Shown: piece after piece, positions 9,973 through 63,046 of the stretch | Layout: each line of letters opens with the position of its first letter | How positions within the stretch are numbered: the first letter of the stretch is position 1 | Assembly (NCBI RefSeq): GCF_001194135.2 | Contig: NC_068985.1 | Location: 104,998,106-105,062,105 of the forward strand | Source of the DNA: Octopus bimaculoides | Lineage: Eukaryota | DNA length: 64,000 nucleotides | Reading direction: 5' to 3' | Made by a program: the position numbers and the translations under genes | Notes under the pieces: model-generated | What the model was told of the DNA's origin: nothing | The model's input: the letters and a program-made list of their open reading frames with translations, nothing else | The model's database searches: none

Positions 9973-10345
9973 CTATAAAAATTGAAGAAACAAAAGAAAA
10001 TATGTACAAAACTGAAACTCCCAACACTCAATGTAACACCAGATTTAAATGTCTATTTAATGACAGAGAAATCACAATTATCTAGTCCTAAAATTTACAC
10101 AAGCAGGATATGATTACTGCTTCAGTAATCTATGTGCCTGTAACCATCCACACTTGTAGATCACCTGATTAAATACAGCAAGAAAAAAGAATTTCAAAAA
10201 TGTGTTTTAATTTAAGGCTTCAAAAACTGGGTAAATGTGTTGTCCAAATGGATCACATAGTTACTCACTTGTGAATTGAATATTCAATAGGTATGACTAA
10301 TTTCAGCAAATAAATTTAAATTTATTTTTCAATTCCAAGACTCAC

Positions 10346-30978: not shown

Positions 30979-33900
30979 CTAAAACAGAAAAACAAAAATA
31001 TCCTTTAAAAACATAAAACCAGTGAAAATGTAAAAGAAAACATTTCTGCACATTAGTTTAACATCAGAGGAAATGTTGGATTTGGTCTTCTTCCATACTG
31101 TATCATCTCTTAGGGCCCGATATTCAAATCTAACAGCGATTCTTAACTTAGTAGCACCTCAATGGAGGCTTAGGGGGTTAACAAGGAGGTAGCAAATGTT
31201 AAAGTGGTACTTGGGTGTTTAGGTGTGATTTTCTTCTGGGAAATTAAAGGAAAAAAAAAATTTTAAACATCTATACAACATGAGGACATTGTGAGCAAAA
31301 ACAAGATGATTTTGTGAAGAATTATGGTTTAAGCAACAAACACCCCTATTTTGGAAGTAAAATTGTTAGCATTTCCCCCCTGTACTTGGTTTATAAAGGA
31401 TTCAGTACATTTTAGTACAACTGTTAGTGAAGTACGATATAAATATACAAGGTAAACTGTTTGACAAAAAGAGAACCTGATCAAACAAACTAACCATTAG
31501 TTTTCGGAGTATAACATATTTACTTTTTTTTTAAAGACAGCCTAATACCGATGTTTGATTCATTAACACCAGTAATAAAGCTAATAGTATTTTTTAAATT
31601 AAGACGCAACATTCTTTGTTCTATACATCCTTGTCTTTAGTAATAATCATAAAAAAAAAAAAAAAGATTAACACAGGATGTAGTTTCAATGTAAATATCC
31701 AAAAGCACATACTGGATGGCATTGTATAAAATATGAATAAACCACTGAACAAAATTAAGATTTTTTTTCAGTGAATGGGAGCATTGAGCTACAAAAGGGT
31801 GAGAATCACTGATCAAACTAAACTTTAGACATCCTATTGTAATAACTGGTATTGTCCATAAGTAAAAATTATATTGCAAGGAATTTATATATATAAAAAA
31901 AATTACATATGCTCTAATTCCATCAAATGATTTTGAATATTTCTAGAATGATGAATTAATTTTTAAAAATTGAGCCTAACAATATAGACAATTTGCCCTA
32001 GATAACTTACATTTAAGCAATCTTTCCTTTAATTCAAGAAGGGATGGAAGCAGTAAATGGTTTAAAGTACAATGAAGCTTTTGCAATCAATTCACAAGCA
32101 GCATACCTGAGTTTGTTGCAACTACGAAGAGAAAACTGATTAGTATACAATTAAAAATTCCTTGCAGCTGATCTTTTTCACATTTTGCCAATTTAATTTT
32201 TTAATGTAATTAATAGGCACTTAAAAAAAAAAACTGAAGATCATTTTAATCTCATAAAAAGAGTTGAAAGAACTAATAAACTGTTGATTTTCAACTCCAT
32301 TTTCTTTACTGTGCAAGATTACAAAGGACAAAAAAGAAACCTCATTGCATGCAATACAGAAAGGAAGACTACCAGACACTCCACTGTACAAGGATGGGCT
32401 GAAAAGTTATGGTAGAGCTGTAAAATTTTGTATGCATTAGTTTCAACTCTTCTTAATAACTGCAGTTTCTTTCTAGATAAACTGACATCTGCCTGTGTAA
32501 TGAAGACTACAAAAGCAACTAGTAACAACTTCTCTTAAAAATGGACAAAGTCTGGCATTGTTATGTTATCAAGTACCTGCAGAAAAAGGGTCTAACTGCC
32601 AAGGACAAACATGTCAACTTAGTTACTACAATCCAGTTTTAGCAACGGTGCAAAAGTGGGCAGCTGAATTCAAGAGAGAGTCTTGAAGATGACCCAACAT
32701 CTGGATGTCTTGCAACTGCTGCTAAGAATAACATCATGTTCACCACATGGTGATGGAGAATAGGCGATTAACTATAAATCAAACAACCAATGCTATTAGC
32801 ACATCCCACAACAGAGTTAAGAATATTCTGAACTGATGACAAGAGTTTCTGCATTCAAGTTACTGAGTCTAATGTATTGCTTATGTAGTCACATTGTTGG
32901 CATTAGAAACCATGCCAAAGCTGACATTGGAGCTCAGTGTGGTATTGTGGCTGGCCAGTTCCTGTCAAACAGTCTAACCCATGTCAGCATGGAAAACAAA
33001 CACTAAATGGTGATGAGTGTTTTGAATTAATTATACATTGTCATGTAGCTTCAATATTTCGACAATGTGATTGTTTAGTTTTAGAATAATATGGTAGGAT
33101 GACTATGAGAGGGAAGACTAGGCCAGTTTTAACTTAAGAGCAGAATATTTAGGTCCGATATCGTTGGTTTAAATGCAAAAGAGTTAAACCATTTTAACTA
33201 GCTGAATCGAATAAAAGAGTAAAGAAAGAAGTATTTGAAAAGTTATATTTCAAATCCTGAAAGTTTCTGATATCATGTATTATCTAATCATTCCTTGTTT
33301 ATTCATTGGCTCTTTGAAACAAAAGCTTTATTCAAACAAATGACAATTTCTTCCCAACATTCTTATCAGTGAAATACATTGTGTTTTGACATTTGAGTTG
33401 AAACCTGTAGGGTAAATATGAAATAGCCAACAATAGCCAAGATAAACAAATGATCTATTCTTATTCAAATGTACTAAGTTTCTCAGAAAGGATATCAACA
33501 GTCAAGGAGATGAAAACAGTGTTCAAATGAAGTGTTAATACTATCATGTCAATATGATTTTAAGTTATGCTGACACATTTGATATAACTTTTCTAAGATT
33601 AAAAAATAAATATATAAAGAGCTGAGATAGAACTTCATATTTTTTAAAATATGTTTTCCATATTTCCATTTTGCAGCATGGAAGGTCAGCATATAAGAAA
33701 AATTTTGAACAGTCAAGTGCATAATAATACAGGTACATTAAACACAGTTACAAACACTGCACTGTGCAATTAATGCTTTGCAGAAAATAAGTGTTATTCT
33801 ACATTTTGATGTGGAAAGCATCCATCTGGAACTGGAGAATAACAATTGTTACAGCAACATATATACAATTTGAAATACCTTACCAAAGCTAACAGGAAAA

Positions 33901-48325: not shown

Positions 48326-49055
48326 TCAAGAAACCATCTGAATCAGTGGTTTTCAACTGTCCATATGGCCTTTGGATGTCATATAAGATTTTGTTATAAA
48401 TTGTTTATACTTTTACAATACATAAAATATTTTCACAAATTTTTTTTTATACAATTCTTAATAATATTTAATTATAAAAATATAATAGGATTTTTTACAC
48501 ATCAGATGGTTTAGAAACACTGACTGAATTTATTTCGTAGATGCTCTGACTAATAATTACTCCCATAAATCAGGCACGACTAAAGGTCTAGGTATCTGGC
48601 AGTTTGCCTCTAACACCAGGAATTTTATCAGGGACAGGGCCCAATTTTTTGTGGGGCTGGGTGGTGGTGGTAACACCCCTTCCTTTCACTATATAAAAAC
48701 ATTTTCTGAGATTTGGGTATGATGTCCCCCTTGCATTCCTTACTCAAAGGCTCTGCACATGCAATTTTTTCTGATAGAGGAACTTTGACAGACTAATCAA
48801 TTGATTATTTATCTAACTGACTGGTAATAAAGCTGAAGTGAAATATAATCAGTGTGTGTGTGGTTTTATTGGCAATATGACCCACCTAAAATACAACAAT
48901 ACGAGTTTCAACATATACTTTCCCATCAAAACAAATACGAAAATGAAACTTCCTACACAACCATCCACATCATATAGGTAAATAAACAGGAGTAGTTTCC
49001 TGTTCTTTTCTCTAGATAGGCATAGATTCTAAGAATTTTTAATATAGTGAGCGCC

Positions 49056-51227: not shown

Positions 51228-51765
51228 NNNNNNNNNNNNNNNNNNNNNNNNNNNNNNNNNNNNNNNNNNNNNNNNNNNNNNNNNNNNNNNNNNNNNNNNN
51301 NNNNNNNNNNNNNNNNNNNNNNNNNNNNNNNNNNNNNNNNNNNNNNNNNNNNNNNNNNNNNNNNNNNNNNNNNNNNNNNNNNNNNNNNNNNNNNNNNNNN
51401 NNNNNNNNNNNNNNNNNNNNNNNNNNNNNNNNNNNNNNNNNNNNNNNNNNNNNNNNNNNNNNNNNNNNNNNNNNNNNNNNNNNNNNNNNNNNNNNNNNNN
51501 NNNNNNNNNNNNNNNNNNNNNNNNNNNNNNNNNNNNNNNNNNNNNNNNNNNNNNNNNNNNNNNNNNNNNNNNNNNNNNNNNNNNNNNNNNNNNNNNNNNN
51601 NNNNNNNNNNNNNNNNNNNNNNNNNNNNNNNNNNNNNNNNNNNNNNNNNNNNNNNNNNNNNNNNNNNNNNNNNNNNNNNNNNNNNNNNNNNNNNNNNNNN
51701 NNNNNNNNNNNNNNNNNNNNNNNNNNNNNNNNNNNNNNNNNNNNNNNNNNNNNNNNTATATATAG

Positions 51766-51915
51766 CTGTTGGCTGTTGAAGAAGAAGAGAAAAATGTAAA
51801 ACAGCAACAAGAGAAAGAAGTCCGCCTACAGAAGTTCCAAAATCGTGTCAGAAAACGGGTTGCAGCCATCCAACAAAAGAAAAAGCAGAAAGAATTGGAA
51901 CTGCGCATGAAAGAG
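51766..51915 (+). CDS. CCDC15: CCDC15-like exon, N-terminal coiled coil (LLAVEEEEKNVKQQQEKEVRLQKFQNRVRKRVAAIQQKKKQKELELRMKE)
   Basis: 150 nt, phase 0-0, GTGAGT donor. Resembles the CCDC15 segment EEELKEQLRKKQEALKHFQKQVKYRV (recalled, not searched). The acceptor abuts an N-gap. Confidence 0.8.
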
Positions 51916-52289
51916 GTGAGTAAATTAAGGATTTCATTAAAGGAAGTCTTATTGTAATGTTATGTTGCTGGAGCTGGCAGTCAAAGCTATATGTGTGGGA
52001 ATGAAATTTGCTTGGTGGGTGCAAACCCAGGTCCAACCCAAGACTTTTAAAGTGTTTACATTGCCCCATAAGAATTGTAGATGGTGCACTTGCACTCCCT
52101 GTACCCCTTGTTCCTGAGCCTATGGTCAAAATTGGGTCTCACACTCGTGTATAGTGATTGTGGCCATAGAGGAGCACTGCCAGCAAAAGTTTTAGTCAAT
52201 CATGTCAATATCCGTATATATTAAAGTTTGGTTCTTATTTTATCAATTCTTATTTACTAGTTACCTTGGTTATTGAGTGGACTGGAGCA

Positions 52290-52390
52290 GCGTGAAATAA
52301 AGTGTCTTGCTCAAGGACAACGCGTTGCTGGGAATCGAACTCACTACCTTACGATCATGAGATGAATGCCCTACCACTAAGCCATGCGCC
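52290..52390 (-). mobile_element. SINE tRNA-like head
   Basis: A-box TGGCTTAGTGG and B-box GAGTTCGATTC followed by the SINE core CCTTGAGCAAGACACTTTATTTCAC; no tRNA 3' acceptor stem. Confidence 0.7.
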
Positions 52391-52931
52391 TTCACACAAA
52401 CATACATACATACATGTTTCTTTCATTTTTTTTTTTTTGTCTACCAAATCCACTCACAGTCTAGGGCTGTAGTAAAAGACACATGCCTAAAGTGCCACGT
52501 TGCAGGAGTGATCCTGAGACCACATGGTTGGGAAGCATCTTGTCAACCACATATCCATGCCTGCACTTAAGGTATACTGAAAATGCTTATCAATTTTAGC
52601 AGTCTTGCTGCTCTCAGCAGTGAATTGCCTCATCCTGTAGTATTTGTTTATTGCTAAGTGGAACATATGACTGAGACCAAAAGTACAGTTGACCATCTCA
52701 CAAGAGGGTATGGTTTGGTTACATGTACCAAACTTTTGCTAATTGTTTTAAAGGCCTACAGACATAAATACCCTGTTAGCTAGTGTCAGGATGCCATCTG
52801 CCTACCTTACAGCTGATGATTCATTTCCCTCGTGGTTGTCTAGCTACAGCTCTGTATGAATTTTATGTAAACTAAATTTCAATTTTTTGGAAAATATCAT
52901 ATGTAAAATATAAAACATTGATTAATTTCAG

Positions 52932-53180
52932 CTTGATGTAGCCCAAGATGTCTTGAGGAACTGCATGAATACTGAATTGCAATCATCCCAGCAAAATACC
53001 AACAAACATTCCCAGACTGAACAATTCACAGCAGATTCTGATAATGTTGATGCTACATTAAACAAACCTAACAGTCATCGTAAATCAAATCACACAACTA
53101 TAAATAATTTAACAACTGGTACTGCCAAAGTAAATCCAAGAAAAACTGACGTATCTGTTAGCTCTGATGAGACAGAAGAA
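52932..53180 (+). CDS. CCDC15: CCDC15-like exon, low-complexity linker (LDVAQDVLRNCMNTELQSSQQ...SSDETEE)
   Basis: TTTCAG acceptor, 249-nt stop-free frame, GTAAGT donor, phase 0-0. Confidence 0.78.
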
Positions 53181-53457
53181 GTAAGTTTATTACTGTTGTT
53201 CACTTTATGCAGGGATTGTCTTTGTCTCTTAGTGTTTTAGGGTCATATTTTAGGGTCACTAAAATAAACCAGTTAAGCACCAGGATGAAGTTAATCTGTG
53301 GTCTTGTGCCAGTCTAAGAAAGTATTATTTAAAGGTGTACACAAATGTGTCACATTTAGAATTAGATTTCTTGATACTGGGTCACAACTAGTTTCTTTAG
53401 ATATCAAGAACCTTTCACACAATCCTGGCTGTTCTTAATTATTTTTACTATCATTAA

Positions 53458-53640
53458 TAAGGTGGCAAGCTGGCAGAATCATTAGCATGCCAGGCAAAAT
53501 GCCACTAGGCTTTTTGCCTGTCCTTATGTTCCGAGTTCAAATTCTGCCAAGATCAACTTTGCCTTTCATCCTTTTGGGGTTGATAAAATAAGTACCAGTT
53601 GAGTACTGGGGTCGATGTAATCGACTAGGCCCCTTCCCCT
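53458..53640 (+). mobile_element. SINE (TAAGGTGGCAAGCTGGCAGAATC family)
   Basis: Colinear with the 48142 and 49056 copies. Confidence 0.8.
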
Positions 53641-53851
53641 ATATGTTTTAGAGTAAAGTAATAGGTGAGTTCAGAGTGGCTCCCGGAGATTCGCCAACAC
53701 TACACCTGATTTTCTCCCCTCCATACACACGCAAGCATGTATCTGACTCATACACTGTTCACTTTCCAGACATTTGTACAATACTGCAGATGCTTTATGC
53801 ACACTTCTGACAAGTTGTAGTGCACCTGAGCACTGTATACAATAATTTCAC

Positions 53852-53886
<35 letters not shown>

Positions 53887-54027
53887 AACAACGAGAGAAC
53901 TTTGTGCAGGCTGGAATCAACTGCATTTAATATTTAAATTTCAGAATTGAACTTTAGACGTCAGAAGAAGGAATGAAGAAAAAAAAACAAAATACTGAAA
54001 TTTATTAAAAAATATTTTATTTTCTAG

Positions 54028-54094
54028 GCATCTGGAAAATTTTCTTTTCCATTAGATTATAAGGAAATGGTAAAGGACTTTAATAACGGCATAG
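54028..54094 (+). CDS. CCDC15: CCDC15-like exon (ASGKFSFPLDYKEMVKDFNNGI)
   Basis: TTTTCTAG acceptor, GTATGT donor, 67 nt. It supplies exactly the phase 0 to 1 shift needed between its neighbours. Confidence 0.7.
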
Positions 54095-54419
54095 GTATGT
54101 GTTTTCTTTTGTCACAGCTTAGAAAAGTTGTATGTTCTCTAAATTTATTTACATTTTCAGTTGTTTTTTTTTTAATCTATTTCATTGTTGAAGAAGTGAC
54201 TTTTGAAGGAATTGTAAAAGGTTGATAGTTGCAATAGAGACATTAGTCTCTCCCTATAACCTTTCAACAAAATTATATATTAAGAAAACAGTAGGACAAT
54301 TAACAACATAATAAAAATAAGTTTTATTTTGGTGATGCTTGGCTTTACAAATCCTGTGTTATTCAGCCTGGCAGCTGCTGGTTAGCTTGTGATCAGCATT
54401 GGAAGGTTAAAGGCTTCGT

Positions 54420-54612
54420 CGAGGCATCTGAGAGGAGCAAGTTGTTGTTACATCGAAGGCATTGCGTTAAAGAGAGCTAGAAAGCGCGCAAAGCACTTTA
54501 AGTACTGGTTTTACTACGCATGCGCACTCGAGGGGCTTCCGGGAAGGCAAGTCCCTTGCGCATACGTAGATTGTACTTCCTTAATGGCGGCCATAATTTC
54601 ACGCCATTAAAG
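54420..54612. promoter_or_regulatory. CpG-rich intronic element with NRF1/ETS/YY1-type motifs
   Basis: TACGCATGCGCA (54515-54526), TGCGCATACGTA (54557-54568), CTTCCGG (54536-54542) and three ATGGC/GCCAT cores (54584-54607). Confidence 0.5.
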
Positions 54613-55003
54613 AATAAAATATTGATGTTGTAATTAGCTGCTACCATTTTCACTACTACCAAATTCCTCTCCATCCTCATCATCATCACCACCACCACAA
54701 TCACATTCTTCTTTTTCTTCTTTGTTCTTTTTCTGGGGACTGAGAATACTACATGTTTTCATGATGTAAGAGGAAGAGGGGCAGTCAGCTACCAAAGGAA
54801 CTTATGATAGGTTGGTGGCTGGGCCTAGTTTGTCAAGAACCATGGAGGAGATGGTTGAGCTGGCAGCAGCCAACAAATAATGTATCCATTGTTATTGTGA
54901 AAGAGTAAAGTAGCCATTAGAATTCAAAATTAAACATAAATGAAGTGGGGAGGGAAGAAATATGTATACTTTTTCAGCCTCATTTATCATCATCATCATC
55001 ATC

Positions 55004-55212
55004 ATCATTGTCGTTTAACGTCTGCTTTCTATGCTAGCATAGGTTGGACGATTTGACTGAGGACTGGTGAACCGGATGGCTACACCAGGCTCCAATCTGA
55101 TCTGGCAGAGTTTCTACAGCTGGATACCCTTCCTAATGCCAACCACTCCGAGAGTGTAGTAGGTGTTTTTACATGCCACCGGCACGAGAGCCAGTCATGC
55201 GGTACTGGCATG
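55004..55212 (-). mobile_element. RTE-tail SINE/LINE 3' end
   Basis: Same family as 26825-26971, with a (CAT)n tail. Confidence 0.85.
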
Positions 55213-55527
55213 AGAATTGGAAATAACTAAGTCAATAAAGTATCAGCCTAGCAGTGTTAAGTTTTCATGTTTGTAATGCTACATTGACAGTAATTAGGTG
55301 CTTATACCTACTTTTCACACCAGGAATGGGTTTTAGATTTCTTCATAATTATTTCATTTAATGGTAATATTCATGCTCACACTTGCAGCTGTTTTATCAT
55401 CTCTAATAAGTTAAGCTTTGAGAAAAATGCAGTTTAGAACTGTAGCCACGAAACCACTTAGCATTTATCTGATTTACTCCACTTTTCCTACATCATTGTT
55501 GGTATCATAGTTACGATGATATTGCAG

Positions 55528-55690
55528 GTGCTAAGCTATCTACGGTTCAATCAAAATACAATATGGATTGGAAGAGTAAGAAACAACAGATGATGCAGCG
55601 TGTACTGACCCGTAAAATGTTCATGGAGATGGACCGTAAAAAGATCAAGATAATTCAGCAGAAAAATAACTTGAATGCAAAGCAGTTTAT
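55528..55690 (+). CDS. CCDC15: CCDC15-like exon (GAKLSTVQSKYNMDWKSKKQQMMQRVLTRKMFMEMDRKKIKIIQQKNNLNAKQF)
   Basis: 163 nt, phase 1 to 2. RKMFMEMDR matches the CCDC15 motif RRLFMDIER. Confidence 0.82.
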
Positions 55691-55869
55691 GTATGTATTC
55701 CATGTTAATAATGTTGAATTATCATTTTATTGAATAATACTTTTAAGTATTGAAGTACTAAAATGAGATTATAATTCTTCTGAATATTAATCTTTTTGTT
55801 AGAAATGAAAGTCTGTGTTTCAGTTGCTTTCATCTCTGGACATCATCAGTACTAGGTTTTCTTCTCTCA

Positions 55870-56091
55870 TTAGCCTTTCGTTATCATATTTCTAATGAAT
55901 TACACTAATTTTGTGTCAATTAATTTTGAAACTAATGAAGAATTTAGGAAAATAACTTTGTCATTATTAAACTAGTGTTTGGAATATAAATTAACATAAA
56001 TTTTTGATGTTAGGTTTTAATTTAGGCCACTATAAACATGACGTTTGTCTCACAGAACCAGGGGCAGCCTCAAGTAGATGGGTCAAAGGCT
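55870..56091. mobile_element. Degenerate piggyBac-like MITE
   Basis: Short inverted ends AGCCTTT...AAAGGCT around a ~220-bp body; TTAA target site only partly preserved. Confidence 0.4.
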
Positions 56092-56936
56092 TTTTATGCT
56101 CCTCTCTTCTGATCTTTAGGGGCTTCCTTGCTTTACCTTTATAAGAACTTAAACGATTTTCATCTATTATAATTGAAACCATTGTTTTATCCATTTTTGA
56201 GTAGGTCTAGGTTTGGTAAGAAATCTGTGAAATGTCACGTTATTTTTTACCACAGTTCACTTGTTATATGTGTAAAGTGTTGATGTTAAACTTGGCAACA
56301 AATTAAGCCTCCCACTCAAATAAACTATGACAGAATTAAAGGAACAGGAATAAATATTGCAAGGCATTTGGTCCAACATTTTTACAGTTCTGCCTGTCCA
56401 CTGCTCTAGATATATAATTTTTCGTTATTGATCTCAAACTGATGAAAGATAAAGTTGACCGTAGTAGAATTTGAACTCAGAGTGCAGAGATTTAGAATAA
56501 ATAACATTCTCTAATGCTTTTACTGGTTACCATCATAAATAAATAAGTCGTAGCATGCATTTAGTGTTGACTGCTGCAAGAAAGAATAATCAATAATATA
56601 ACAGATTAATTTTTTTTGATTTTGATTAAGTCAGCCTTTTGCTACTTTGGGTTTCTCTTGTGGGGGGTACAAAGTTTTCAGGTAAGTTATGACTGAAGAA
56701 ATGATGGAATTCACATGCACATATATGTGTGTGAAGGAGAAAAAGGAAATGATATAAAGGGAAAAAGAAGAGAAATGAAAAAGAAGAAATAAAAGAAGGA
56801 AAGAAAACAAAAGAAAGAAAATAGAAAGGGAGGAAGAAGAAGTGGAAAGGAAAGGATTATTCTTACCAAATTGCCATGGCATCATTTGTATTTACATTGT
56901 GCCAATTTCTATGTAAAATGTTAGAGAAAGAAACCA

Positions 56937-58326
56937 AGCTGTTTGTTACAATACATACATCTAAAGCAAAAATTTTCAGGGGGTCCTTAAAATACTATTG
57001 TGAATCACCAATTTACCATTTTGTGAGCGGAGCACACAAAATCTTATATGGATCCTCAGGGGCGATATGGATTCCGGTTCAGAACCACTGATATTAAAGC
57101 ATTCGTAATGGGTCATTTCCTATAATAAAATGTTTCGTTTTACGGTCTAAGGGAGATAACTATCCACAACCTAGCAACTAAGGGAAGTAACTAAATTTTT
57201 TTAAAAACCGGAGAAAGACGGAAGAAAAATAAATAACGAAAGGCAAAAGTAAATTAGTAAAAAATAAAAATAATTAAAATAGAAGCAGGCACATTCCATT
57301 CAATTATACATGACACCAGGAGAAATTGGTTTTCCTCTTCTAAATTTTCTTTTGAGAAATATTAAAGCGTTTGGCAAGGCAAAGTCGCTGGAACAACCAG
57401 TCAGTCTCTCGAAAACTCATCTGATAATTTAGTGTGTTGAGATATCAACGAAGTCAAAAGCTTCTTTATTAGCGGTCTTGTACAGGTAATGGTTAAAAAA
57501 CCACAGACTGAAATGTGTGATTCACAGAATTTGTCGATAGATTACGGCCTTTTCTCTTCTTTTCTATAAAGGGAGGTAATTTAATTTAATCCGCAATGTA
57601 TCATCTTTTATAGAAGGGAAGGCACAGAAATTGTTAACTTCACTAAATCTTTTATTACTAGGTTTTAACAGCATTAAAGGCCTCCAGCCAAATCAATGTG
57701 TTAGGCCCTATAATATTTATTTATTGATAGCAAATCGAAACATACATAAATCATAATCGGACCTCTAGTCTCCTGAGGTCCGCTGTTAACTGCCCAGTGT
57801 ACTTATGTCTTAAGACGGCGCTTACTTGGTGTCAACATTTTCGTCACAGTCTACGACTTGGTCACCGTCACAGTTCCACAGCAAGTTAACAGTTTTTGTG
57901 TGTTTTTGAAAGGCTAGAATGAGTCTTCTACACAGCTTTAGTTTCAACAAACAGTCTCAGATCAAATCACCTGCCAGACAAGTACAGCTCTGGAATTACC
58001 TTTTTTAAAGCAGAAATTAATTTAATTTAATTTTTAAATTGGAATAACGATAGTAATTTAAAGAGGAAGCGAGGGATAGTCGATTATATCACTCAGTACG
58101 TGACTGGTACTTTATTTTATCTACGCTGAAACATTTTATTATAGGAAATGACCCATTACGAATGCTTTACATCAGTGGTTCTGAACCGGAATCCATATCG
58201 CCCCTGAGGATCCATATAAGATTTTGTGTGCTCCGCTCACACAATAGTAAATTGGTGATTCACAATAGTATTTTAAGGACCCCCTGAAAAATTTTGCTTT
58301 AGATGTATGTATTATAACAAACAGCT
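56937..58326. repeat. 200-bp inverted repeat (arms 56937-57136 and 58128-58326)
   Basis: Arms differ by 5 substitutions and one 1-bp indel by manual alignment; the ORF track shows the same peptide on both strands. Confidence 0.97.
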
Positions 58327-58447
58327 GAAAGGATGAAAGGTAAATTTGACCGCAGCGACATTTGAGCACAGAACTTAAAGAGCCGGAAGAGATGCTGCTA
58401 GGCATTTTGCCCAAACGCTCTAACGATTCTGCAGGCTCACCGCCTTA
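58071..58447 (-). mobile_element. SINE split by the inverted-repeat right arm
   Basis: 5' half at 58327-58447 and 3' half at 58071-58127 rejoin into the CTTTCATCCTTTC...GATAAAATAAAGTACCAG module. Confidence 0.85.
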
Positions 58448-59242
58448 ACGGAAATGATAAATAGATCGCTAATTATTCAGCTTTCATGTAGAATTATATT
58501 GCATCAGTGATTACTGGTTTCATATACGATAGCCTGTGATATCGTCTTCTGGTATTGATAAATATGAGATCTTACTCGCTAAGCGGGTGCACTGGACGCC
58601 ACTCCCGCTCACCATTTATTCAATGGTGCACCATCAGATTTACTCCACTTTAGTGACTCCACTTCAGCATTATTACAAATTGATGCCCCCTTCCTAATAT
58701 TCTGAAGCACCCCCAGGCACCAAAGTCTTGCGACGCCCCACGGGGGTATGACTGCTATCTTCATTACACTATCTGAATTAATTTCTTAAGGCTGTTTTTC
58801 AAGAAGTAAGCTACTTTAAAAATATGATTTTTTCACTCGGAGATTTTTACATGTTTACTATGACATCTTAGCTCTGAATGATGTAATGTCTGAAAAAGAA
58901 GGAAAAACATTATTTTCCTTATAGCATGTCTTAAGCTTGCAAATATCGGCATAGTTAAAATTGGTGTTTTCCTTGGTGTTTCAAACTAGAGTAATTTGAT
59001 TCCGCGTACTAGTTGGACACGAGTAACTAGTTAGCACAGCACTATCCACAAGGAAATACTAGAGGCATTTATAGTATATATTCGGTTTTGTTTATTTACT
59101 TATTCATGTTTCGAAATTTGCTATTGCGATTAACTAGCAGTTTATCATATAATTAAATTAATTTTTTTTTAAAAGTTAATATTCAAATAGAATATAAATA
59201 TATAAAAAAAGCTATGCAAATGTCCCCCAGTAACTATGTAAC

Positions 59243-59498
59243 GGTAATCTTCAAGTTTAGGGGGATAAAAAAAAAAATTCAAGGGAAGTAACTGAACGTC
59301 TTACCAGTATTCTCCGTACATCTCTGTTTATAAATAAATCACACACGTGATTTGATTGACGTTAGGGTTAGGATTAGGGTTAGGGTGTGATTTATTTATA
59401 AACAGCTAGAAGAAAACGGATAATACTGGTAAGTCGTTCAGTTATTTCCCTTGAATATTTTTATTTATTTTTTTATCCCCCTAAACTTGAAGATTACC
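59243..59498. mobile_element. Foldback/Mutator-type MITE, 256 bp
   Basis: TIRs at 59243-59344 and 59385-59498 (outer ~31 bp and inner ~21 bp perfect); perfect 9-bp TSD CTATGTAAC at 59234-59242 and 59499-59507. Confidence 0.93.
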
Positions 59499-59864
59499 CT
59501 ATGTAACATCCTTCACTGCACACATTAAGGAAGCGTTAGTGTGTATAAAGAACCCCCTAATTTTTAGGGCTTAAAATTTGGAAAAAAGGTATTGTAAGGG
59601 ATTATAATACTATCCATGTATAAGAAACTCCTATAGTTCTTAAGCCTAATTTTTAACAAAAAAGGGTTCCTTATACACTTTAAAATATGGTAATTTATTT
59701 CAGTTGCTTTTATTCTTTGTATGAAATAGAAAATTATCTGTGAAATAGTTTTAAAGGAGAACAAAGTTACTTCCCTTGTAATGACAATTACCTCCCTTGG
59801 TACCTTAAACTTGAAAATGTTTTAGAGGTTAACACTTTTCATCATGCAGGCGTCAAGTTTTGTT

Positions 59865-60048
59865 TGTACGCCGGTCAAAAATATTTAGTGGCGTTTATTC
59901 CGGTTCTTTACGTTCCGAGTTCAAATTCTGCCGAAGTTGACTGTGCCTTTCATCCTTCCGAGGTCGTTAAAATAAGTACTAGTTTAAAATAAGTACTAAC
60001 CGCTCTCTCTAAAATTGCTGGCCTTGTGCCAAAAATTGAAATCAATAT
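59865..60048 (+). mobile_element. SINE (same family as 48142)
   Basis: TTACGTTCCGAGTTCAAATTCTGCCGA...GGCCTTGTGCCAAAA. Confidence 0.75.
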
Positions 60049-60761
60049 TTTCCATCACGCGAAGGAATTAATTCAGGGTAACGTTCTGATAAAGGAAAAA
60101 GTCTGCTGTTCGGTGACATAAGATATCCACAGCTCAGTGAGGCAGCTTTTGTGCTTCATTCACTGGGACTGTGGCTTGAAGTAGCCATATGAACTTTTCT
60201 CTGATATCAAAATAATGATCAATGCTTTACTTAATCAATTGTGCTGTATCAGAATAATGTTATGAATAAATTATCTCTTTAATGTCGTTTGATAGTTATG
60301 ACTGTTTATTTCATGACTTTAAGAAATAAAATGAAATAATAATTAGCAACTCTCAAGGTAGAGAAACATGTATGTTTACAATGAAGAATATAATTTTCAA
60401 AGTTATCTCAAAAGACTGAACTTTCAGTCCTACCACTGTGGACTTCACACCATCTCAAGAATCAAATGCTTCCCCTTCCCCCCAAATGGATATCATAATT
60501 CTCTATAAATTTTCAACAATCATAAAGCTTTTTAAATGACTATGGAATTTTGATGGGTATGAATAATAATAATAGTTATAACAAGATTGAAATTCATTTT
60601 GCTAATTAGGTTTTGGTGACTTTCATTCAGTTGACCGGCTAACTAGGAATTTTTTTCTGCTTGTGTATTAGAGTTGACTAATTCTAAGAAAATGTATTCT
60701 CTTTCTACATTTATTTGGTTTGGATTATTGATAATCAATCAAATTAATTTCTTAATTTCAG

Positions 60762-60908
60762 CTCATTTTATGAAAATAAATGGATAGAACAGTCCAATGA
60801 TCCTCTAAACTTTCAGCCTAAAACACAACATCAAATTTTTGAACTAGAAATAGATGACTGGTCCAGAAAACATTCTAAACTAAACAGAATGTGCAGCTTC
60901 TATCAAAG
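60762..60908 (+). CDS. CCDC15: CCDC15-like exon (SFYENKWIEQSNDPLNFQPKTQHQIFELEIDDWSRKHSKLNRMCSFYQ)
   Basis: TTTCAG acceptor, 147 nt, phase 2-2, open frame, AG|GTAAAG donor. Confidence 0.72.
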
Positions 60909-61629
60909 GTAAAGACTAATTGTAGGATTTCTTTTTCTATTCAAACAGAACTTATTTATGTAGTTTGTTATCGTCATTGTCATGGTCAACGTTGTCATTG
61001 TTGTCGTCACTGTTATTTTTACTTTTCTATACTTGCATGGGTCAGAAGAGCATAGGCTGGAATAGTATTCTAAGTCAGAATGTCCTTTCTGACACCAACC
61101 CTGCTTGTTTCCAAGTCTATCAAATAACAAGACAGCCTTGACATGTTTAATGCATAGTTGTGGAAACAAATGAACTGTAGAAGTAATTAATAGAAAAGGA
61201 CATTTGAACATGAAAAACCTCTAGTTAGCCATGAGGACCAGAATTAGCATAGTTTCAGTATGTTTAAAGTCTGTAGATTTTAATGCCATGATACTTCTGG
61301 TTGTCCCAGTGTATGTAAATATCACTGAGGAGTTGAACATCACAAAGAGAAAGTGTTAGGCCATTGAGAGTGACAACATGCAAAAGAAATGAAACATTTT
61401 AGACGGTAGCATGTAATACAGTTCAATAAGAAGGATTGTAGTTTTTTTGACTGGGAACTGTCTACAACTATCAGTGTTTTTGTAATCAATTTGAAAATCC
61501 ATTGCATGGGTGATTAGCCCATTCAACTTCACCAGAACCCTGTTGGCCAGCTTTACCTGTTTCCATCTCTCACGATGAGGAGGAGGGGTTGGGCTTTGAG
61601 AGATGCCATCTAATTTTGCATAGTATACT

Positions 61630-61950
61630 TAAAATTAGATGGCCTGAACACATAAGCAATATGAAGCTATGGCAAAGAACAAATCAAGTTTCGATTAGGG
61701 AGCAAATATTTCAGAAAAAGTGAAAGTGGATTGATAGCACAATTAGAAAAGAAACCAAATGTAGCGAAAAGTGCTTTACAGTGGAATCCGGATGGATATA
61801 GAAAGAAGGGTCGGCCTAAGAACTCGTGGCGTGGATCAGCACAAAAGGAACTAGAGAAAGGGGGACATTCATGGCAGAGTATAAGTACAGAAGCGAAAAA
61901 TTATGCGACATGGAATTCATTTATAAGTGGGTTAAAGGCAAGAAAAAAAA
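61630..61950 (+). mobile_element. RTE-type LINE C-terminal fragment
   Basis: IRWPEHISN...AKSALQWNPDGYRKKGRPKNSWR motif typical of RTE ORF C-termini. Confidence 0.85.
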
Positions 61951-63046
61951 AAGCTGTCTACAACAAACTCACTGAAAGAGTACTAGGATGAAGGAAAATA
62001 GGTATATGACTTTTGTTGCAAAATGAACATGAAGGAAAGAAAGAATTTATGAATGTGATGTTTGTGATGTTTTTGGTGGGAAAAACAAAATAAAATTGAA
62101 TGAAAGACAAAAATGCTAGGATTGATCTAGTAGCAGTAGCAACAAGGTGTAAGAAAGACGTTAGAGAGAGATAGAAAGAAAAATGGTGAGGAAAAAAAGC
62201 ATGTCCTCGAAACTATGATACATACATACTTACACACGCACATATACACACATATACCCCCCCCCCCATGCATGCACGCATGTAAACACACACACACACA
62301 CACACNNNNNNNNNNNNNNNNNCCATGCATGCACGCATGTAAACACACACACACACACACACACACACACGTATGTCTTTGTATTTGTGTCTGTCTCCCA
62401 AAATCATTTGACAGCCAGTGTTGGTTTGTTTATGCATCCATTACTTGGCAGTTCAGAAAAAGAGGACTGATAGAGTAAGTACCAGACTTTAAACAAAATA
62501 AGTACTTGAGGTGATCTGTTCAGCTAAAACCCCCGAAGGCAGTGCTCCAGCATGGCCACAGTCCAGTGACTGAAACATGTGAATAGGATAAGAAAAGATA
62601 AAAGATATCTATAAACAAAGATGAAAAATTAAATTGAAAGTTTGTGGATGAAACATATGTTCATATGAGATGCGTGTTTGTGACTTTGTGTGCATAATCA
62701 TATTTCTGTATGCTTATGCATTGCTTTACATGTGTTGTTGACATGTATTTAATAAGTGTTTTAGTTCAGGATAGTTAAGCATTACTGACAGCTGGCTGAA
62801 GTAACATCTACATAGATGCAGCTAAATGATGCTTGTTGTCCTTTCCTATTTCTGTTCTCCTATCCCGCTAATTCACAGGTAACTTATGTTGATAATGTGT
62901 GTGTGTATATTTGATGTTGTTGTTCTCTGTTATTGTGTAGATTTTTTTTTTGAAATGCAGTTTTTATTTTATGTACCTTACAAATTTTCTTTCTAAAAAA
63001 AAAGGCAAAAAAAAAACAAGATAATTGCTTTGTATTGTTTCTCCAG

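Follow-up and report, generated by a model that had tools for sequence, protein, structure and literature searches.

The DNA analysed here (the window) is a stretch of 64,000 nucleotides from Octopus bimaculoides chromosome CM046605.1 (assembly GCA_001194135.2). The features of interest lie in a 5.07-kb intron of LOC106881311, a CCDC15-like gene on the plus strand whose product carries a CCDC15_C domain; the intron is bounded by an exon ending at 55690 and another starting at 60762, with the splice sites read from the sequence. There are eight N gaps in the window and none between 51757 and 62305. Farther upstream, at 10300–39000 on the minus strand, lie exons of a gene for a PP2A scaffold subunit (PPP2R1A-like, with HEAT repeats). 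Overlapping plus-strand ORFs at 61514–61988, with the translation ...RKKGRPKNSWRGSAQKELEKGGHSW..., presumably resemble the C-terminal end of a reverse transcriptase ORF of the LINE type; they are probably the remnant of a retrotransposon in the next intron. The features discussed below are as follows:

55691–60761, plus strand: host intron of LOC106881311, 5.07 kb
56937–57136, plus strand: left arm (donor), 200 bp of intron DNA up to the flank/element boundary, delimited by repeat search and blastn
57127–57135: left TSD of the TIR element, AAAATGTTT, identical in Octopus sinensis and Octopus vulgaris
57136–59813: non-autonomous TIR element of 2678 bp ('MULE-like', unproven), with TIRs CGTTTTACGGTCTAAGGGAG... 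and CAAGTTTAAGGTACCAAGGGAG... and the subterminal motif AAGGGAAGTAAC
58077–58447, minus strand: octopus SINE copy (recipient) nested in the TIR element, ~172 bp without its insert, similar to SINE copies in the window and in the O. vulgaris locus
58125–58131: GCTGAAA at the left junction, whose GAAA (58128–58131) is microhomologous to donor TTTC (57133–57136)
58128–58326, minus strand: right arm, an inverted 199-bp copy and lineage-specific templated insertion, 97 per cent identical to the donor and absent from the orthologous site of the outgroups
58324–58330: GCTGAAA at the right junction, whose GCT (58324–58326) is microhomologous to donor AGC (56938–56940)
59814–59822: right TSD of the TIR element, AAAATGTTT; AAAACCTTT in O. 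sinensis and O. vulgaris

A first-pass annotation of the window had reported that the 200 bp to the left of the TIR element recur in inverted orientation about 1 kb inside it, and blastn recovers this match between 56937–57136 and 58128–58326 (200 alignment columns, 97.0 per cent identity, E-value 4e-92). A repeat search splits the same pair in two (56937–57097 with 58166–58326, 161 nt, 96 per cent; 57095–57136 with 58128–58169, 42 nt, 100 per cent). The arms differ by five substitutions (at 56949, 56972, 57017, 57021, and 57094) and one 1-bp indel (at 57093), and the donor ends 991 bp away from the copy. From left to right, the donor is composed of 40 bp of unique DNA, the core of a hAT-like MITE (~56977–57091), 36 bp of unique DNA, the 9-bp TSD of the TIR element (57127–57135), and the first base of that element (57136), and the copied segment thus includes both the TSD and the element's first base, as the annotation had stated. 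Both arms reach 45–46 bp past their internal CAGTGGTTC terminus. We agree with the annotation that the right arm was copied secondarily from the left flank of the element and is not a second transposon insertion.

About 85 of the 199 copied bp match no repeat in 235 kb of octopus DNA, and the outer 40 or 46 bp of the unit have no other copies there; the remaining 115-bp core is the hAT-like MITE, a relative of which, with a terminus related to CAGTGGTTC, is found at 48342 of the window. An 8-bp TSD of the hAT type was sought around the MITE core and was not found. The copied DNA is noncoding intron DNA. An exact look-up of the two ORFs spanning the arms, a protein-level search of the translations across both junctions for ORFs called on octopus contigs, and Rfam and Pfam scans of the region all returned no match. 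A polypurine (GAA/GGA-rich) tract of ~140 bp lies at 56720–56860, ~75 bp beyond the end of the copied stretch at 56937.

The TIR element that encloses the copy is flanked by a perfect 9-bp direct repeat (AAAATGTTT, 9/9 match). Its TIRs are ~60 bp long, contain repeated AAGGGA(A/G)GTAA motifs, and are only ~70 per cent alike in all three octopus species compared, with the same mismatches throughout. The element at 57136–59813 contains no ORF or Pfam match, and no further members of its TIR family occur in 235 kb of octopus DNA. The annotation's term 'MULE-like' was assessed from the TSD and from the TIRs, long ones with subterminal repeats being expected of a MULE. The TSD length expected of MULEs (8–11 bp, typically 9 bp) is seen twice at this locus (AAAATGTTT and CTATGTAAC). 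The TSDs of Merlin elements are also 8–9 bp long, and, judged from its sequence, the MULE identity of the element is unproven.

The second of these TSDs, CTATGTAAC (9 bp), belongs to a small TIR element of 256 bp at 59243–59498. Its TIR (GGTAATCTTCAAGTTTAGGGGGAT...AAGGGAAGTAAC) has motifs in common with the large element, its centre (~59365–59388) consists of TTAGGG-like telomere repeats, and the stretch around it (58975–59592) aligns to nothing in either O. sinensis or O. vulgaris. The small element prompted us to consider a boundary of the large element 9 bp farther out; this boundary was rejected, as it is flanked by no TSD (3–4 of 9 bases match, versus 9 of 9 at the boundary used here).

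Orthologous loci were reached via the host protein in O. vulgaris (OX597818.1; L001 below) and O. sinensis (CM016863.1; L002 below), with the isoform X1 proteins of the host gene leading to the O. sinensis and O. bimaculoides loci. The O. bimaculoides locus retrieved in this way (L003) comes from the same assembly as the window and is not independent of it; the two are 100 per cent identical over the 5 kb compared (56000–60999). The TIR element has the same ends in O. sinensis and O. vulgaris, where its nested SINE and the left arm are likewise in place. In O. bimaculoides, the element occupies its ancestral site with its ancestral TSD. In both outgroups, a single orthologous copy of the donor is present and contiguous with its flanks (O. 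sinensis L002 32239–32276 and 32690–32857). At the recipient site, both outgroups have an uninterrupted SINE with a single GCTGAAA (TATCTAC GCTGAAA GGATG; O. sinensis L002 34130–34885), whereas O. bimaculoides reads TATCTAC GCTGAAA (192 bp) GCTGAAA GGATG. The annotation's observations that the copy splits a SINE and is bounded by a GCTGAAA present at both 58125–58131 and 58324–58330 are thereby placed on a polarised footing, since the outgroups have only one such motif and the same SINE unbroken.

No recipient sequence was lost at the insertion (0 bp), which lies 992 bp into the 2678-bp element. The outgroups carry element, SINE, and donor, with the SINE site intact; the right arm was therefore inserted in the O. 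bimaculoides lineage alone, as exactly 199 bp and without loss. The alignment of the orthologous intron that the annotation had proposed hence settles the order of events: the MULE-like element and the SINE came first, and the inverted copy later. The annotation had also named a finding that would speak against its reading, namely the copy in species without the element's ends; the reverse was found, as the ends occur in species without the copy.

The junctions can be read to the base. In reverse complement, the donor reads ...cGAAACATTTT...AAACAGCTtgg... (in short, cGAAAC...CAGCTtgg), which bears out the annotated GAAA and GCT microhomologies at the two junctions. Each of the 199 inserted bases has its match in the donor, and the 'duplicated GCTGAAA' therefore consists of 4 + 3 nt of microhomology and is not a target-site duplication. 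In an ordinary transposon insertion, the TSD is independent of the flanks of the source copy; here, seven of the seven 'TSD' bases are also found beside the donor, and the probability of seven bases matching by chance is ~6e-5. The point at which the copying departed from the SINE (58127–58131) and the point to which it returned (58125–58128) are essentially the same position.

Each arm has since accumulated changes of its own. Polarised by the outgroups, three derived changes fall in the left arm (56972, 57017, and 57093–57094) and two in the right arm (the partners of 56949 and 57021), which keeps the ancestral state at three of the difference sites; about seven more changes relative to the outgroups are common to both arms. 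The Kimura two-parameter (K2P) distance between the arms is 0.0256, compared with 0.071–0.085 for the intron between O. bimaculoides and O. sinensis, which dates the copying event to about a third of the time since these species split. With O. bimaculoides having separated from O. sinensis and O. vulgaris 13.3–33.5 My ago (PMC13282606), the copy is roughly 4–12 My old. The substitutions particular to each arm show that the copy is old and, together with the changes shared by both, make an assembly artefact or a recent conversion unlikely.

The explanation that we favour, as the best one and a reasonably probable one, is a microhomology-mediated template switch for which no transposase would be needed. 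It agrees with the part of the annotation that proposed local templated synthesis, given the microhomology at each junction (4 nt and 3 nt) and the empty site in the outgroups. In its favour, the outgroups show both the empty site and the donor in their ancestral form, the junctions and their microhomologies can be placed to the base, and the two arms have aged independently. As for the path of the polymerase, we infer that the 3' end of a growing or broken plus strand would have halted in the SINE at ...TATCTACGCT(GAAA), at 58127–58131, and would have paired by GAAA to the TTTC at 57133–57136 of the plus strand, 1 kb behind. Extension leftward along the plus-strand template would have proceeded for ~196–200 nt, to 56937–56940, whereupon the strand would have detached and re-paired by GCT at 58125–58127, nearly at its exit point, for synthesis or joining to resume. 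The expected outcome is an exact 199-bp inverted insertion with zero loss from the recipient and an apparent 7-bp duplication derived wholly from the two microhomologies. The initial 3' end could have been either a stalled nascent strand (of the FoSTeS/MMBIR type) or a resected end of a double-strand break (of the synthesis-dependent end joining/SDSA type), and a single stall or break with one excursion fits, since departure and return essentially coincide. Two observations sit less easily with a template switch: its length and reach (199 bp from 1 kb away) exceed those of the usual catalogued short events (tens of bp), and the start of the copy (57133–57136) straddles the boundary between flank and element (57135/57136), which argues against a random choice of site.

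This coincidence is what the annotation had relied on in proposing a break made by a transposase. Under such a scheme, the transposase of a family with 9-bp TSDs would have nicked or cut the left end at 57135/57136, and the flank strand thus exposed, or the flank resected during gap repair after excision, would have templated a repair strand that had reached 58131 and that later re-engaged the sister copy. The start of the copy does lie within a 4-nt interval across the exact boundary, and, if only AAA/TTT paired, it would be the last flank base. Within 1.5 kb there are about 60 sites with 4 nt of microhomology (22 of the inverted type and ~37 of the direct type), and a 6-nt site at 56974 was left unused; the chance of hitting the terminus is therefore ~1/60, or at most 5–7 per cent when two donor junctions and two termini are considered. 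MULE transposase is known to cleave exactly at the boundary, with a hairpin left on the flanking side (PMC5499845), recent activity of Mutator families is known from Octopus (PMC13282606), and a return to the departure point is compatible with multiple invasion cycles of gap repair. Against this, the element is common to the three species and so is older than their 13–33 My split, and, as its TIRs are only ~70 per cent alike in all of them, it was probably immobile 4–12 My ago. Moreover, the junction between flank and element is intact and without a footprint; the recipient break is internal, in the nested SINE 992 bp from the end; no part of the element was lost, versus the large, terminus-biased deletions expected when gap repair after excision is aborted (PMC8277862); and no sign of later mobilisation is found in 235 kb of octopus DNA. 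Such a scheme would also require either two simultaneous breaks or a snap-back to one of ~12 sites in cis, for a likelihood gain of only ~5-fold. Direct strand transfer by a transposase was considered as the origin of the left junction and rejected, because it would make the microhomology unnecessary. The claim of a transposase-made break is thus not supported, given that the start of the copy at the transposon end is its sole link to the data and has a chance of roughly 2–7 per cent of being accidental. We consider initiation by a transposase unlikely, and we think it improbable that the locus preserves a base-resolved intermediate of MULE-type flank capture in an animal, begun by a nick or cut at the boundary.

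The other explanations that we considered are much less probable still. A reverse transcriptase (that of a LINE, or Pol theta) might have extended the broken plus-strand end on host intron RNA: the host gene lies on the plus strand, intron cDNA primed from ...GAAA on UUUC would equal the right arm on the plus strand, and LINEs are abundant and active in Octopus (PMC13282606). A poly(A) or tail repeat is absent, the target duplication consists of the microhomologies only, and the priming site is internal; no feature here separates RNA from DNA as the template, and we regard an RNA template as very unlikely. Equally slight is the probability that microhomology-mediated end joining inserted a free double-stranded 200-bp fragment (56937–57136) from the sister chromatid or the homologue where the SINE had broken, for, although the junctions are compatible with alt-EJ using 3–4 nt at each fragment end, three breaks and a faithful repair of the donor would be needed, where templated synthesis produces the same junctions from one lesion. 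That the right arm is not present in the animal at all deserves mention, as GCA_001194135.2 is a short-read assembly with N gaps in other parts of the window. We give such an artefact very little weight: the arms differ in six columns, with derived states on each side, the insert is base-exact within the SINE with microhomology at each end, the nearest N gaps lie outside 51757–62305, and a graph error would yield identical arms or overlaps of k-mer length. The least probable explanation is an ordinary insertion of a dispersed repeat of 192–200 bp into the SINE. The 7-bp direct repeat around the insert and the dispersed hAT-like MITE at its core would fit it; however, no TSD flanks the left copy, and the 'TSD' bases are common to both copies, which would require a seven-base coincidence; the unit combines unique DNA, the MITE, and the TSD and first base of a different element; and its outer 40 or 46 bp have no further copy in 235 kb of octopus DNA. 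Because the junction bases all match the donor, an ordinary transposon insertion with an independent TSD is ruled out.

The template switch that we favour has close counterparts in other animals. Tan et al. (2021) catalogued 370 Pack-TIRs in 100 animal genomes and attributed most of the single-copy ones to transposition-independent gap filling (PMC8277862), which makes the annotation's statement that the process is described mainly in plants outdated. In these animal cases, the donors in cis are mostly under 5 kb away, the breakpoints have a median of 2 bp of microhomology, the median insert is 224 bp, orthologous transposable elements in outgroups do not have the duplication, and the breakpoints are internal with small gaps (PMC8277862). 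The octopus locus resembles them in these respects: a TIR element with the 9-bp TSD AAAATGTTT encloses a 199-bp copy (near their 224-bp median) of nearby DNA, the parent lies in cis 1 kb away, GAAA (4 nt) and GCT (3 nt) provide microhomology at the breakpoints, O. sinensis and O. vulgaris carry the element without the duplication, and the breakpoint is internal with a gap of 0 bp. It differs in that the parent is the element's own immediate flank, beginning at the terminus, the break fell within the SINE that the element contains, the TSD of the host element is 9 bp long, and more than half of the copied DNA is an old MITE. The survey of Tan et al. reported no Pack-MULE in the 100 animal genomes, none of which was from a cephalopod (PMC8277862).

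Compared with plant Pack-MULEs, the octopus case likewise has a TIR element with a 9-bp TSD and a copy of host DNA inside. In contrast to them, no gene fragment was captured, the parent lies in cis (in plants, usually in trans), 235 kb of octopus DNA yield neither further copies of the element nor signs that it was mobilised, and its MULE identity is the unproven one discussed above. Templated (filler) insertions made by synthesis-dependent microhomology-mediated end joining are usually a few to tens of bases long, with a template within ~100 bp. As in such insertions, a break end would have been extended on a nearby template after microhomology pairing and joined by a second microhomology. 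The same geometry is found in the four-point template-switch model (Loytynoja and Goldman 2017; PMC5453318) and in FoSTeS/MMBIR (Hastings et al. 2009; PMC2621351). In common with these models, the event at the octopus locus would involve a jump to a nearby complementary strand, inverted copying, and a return beside the departure point, with 3–4 nt microhomologies at both switch points and the creation of a hairpin-forming inverted repeat; unlike them, its 199 bp from 1 kb away exceed the catalogued short events and are far below typical MMBIR rearrangements. In our analysis, the octopus case would best be classed as a Pack-TIR formed by gap filling, that is, as an unusually clean example of a known mechanism.

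The case opens no new mechanism. Its value lies in showing, to the base and with outgroups to polarise the change, how a long inverted repeat may arise from a local template switch, with host DNA landing in a transposon as a by-product, and it would bring a cephalopod and a TIR element with 9-bp TSDs into the gap-filling picture of animal Pack-TIRs. The intron of the pre-mRNA is now predicted to contain a 200-bp stem with 97 per cent of its bases matched; the predicted RNA fold of 56917–58346 has this ~200-bp stem between the arms and a minimum free energy of −560 kcal/mol. Octopus is known for heavy A-to-I RNA editing, and it is plausible that the modelled stem could serve as an ADAR substrate.

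Three further differences between the species were noted at this locus. A TIR element of ~410 bp (GGATCTTTTCGGTTTGAACGGCAG...) with an 8-bp TSD (CAAAATTT/CCAAATTT) is present only in O. sinensis (L002 ~32277–32689) and O. vulgaris (L001 ~32280–32718), at the site equivalent to 56975 of the window, and both O. bimaculoides arms have the empty site. Another ~410 bp (L002 33720–34130; L001 34158–34568), between the equivalents of 58018 and 58011 of the window, are absent in O. bimaculoides. Finally, the O. vulgaris orthologue of the donor arm contains a head-to-head SINE dimer (L001 32837–33204, 368 bp, 97.8 per cent self-complementary, with the 10-bp TSD GTTCAGAACC), which is another product of inverted duplication in the same spot and, being absent from O. 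sinensis, is very recent.
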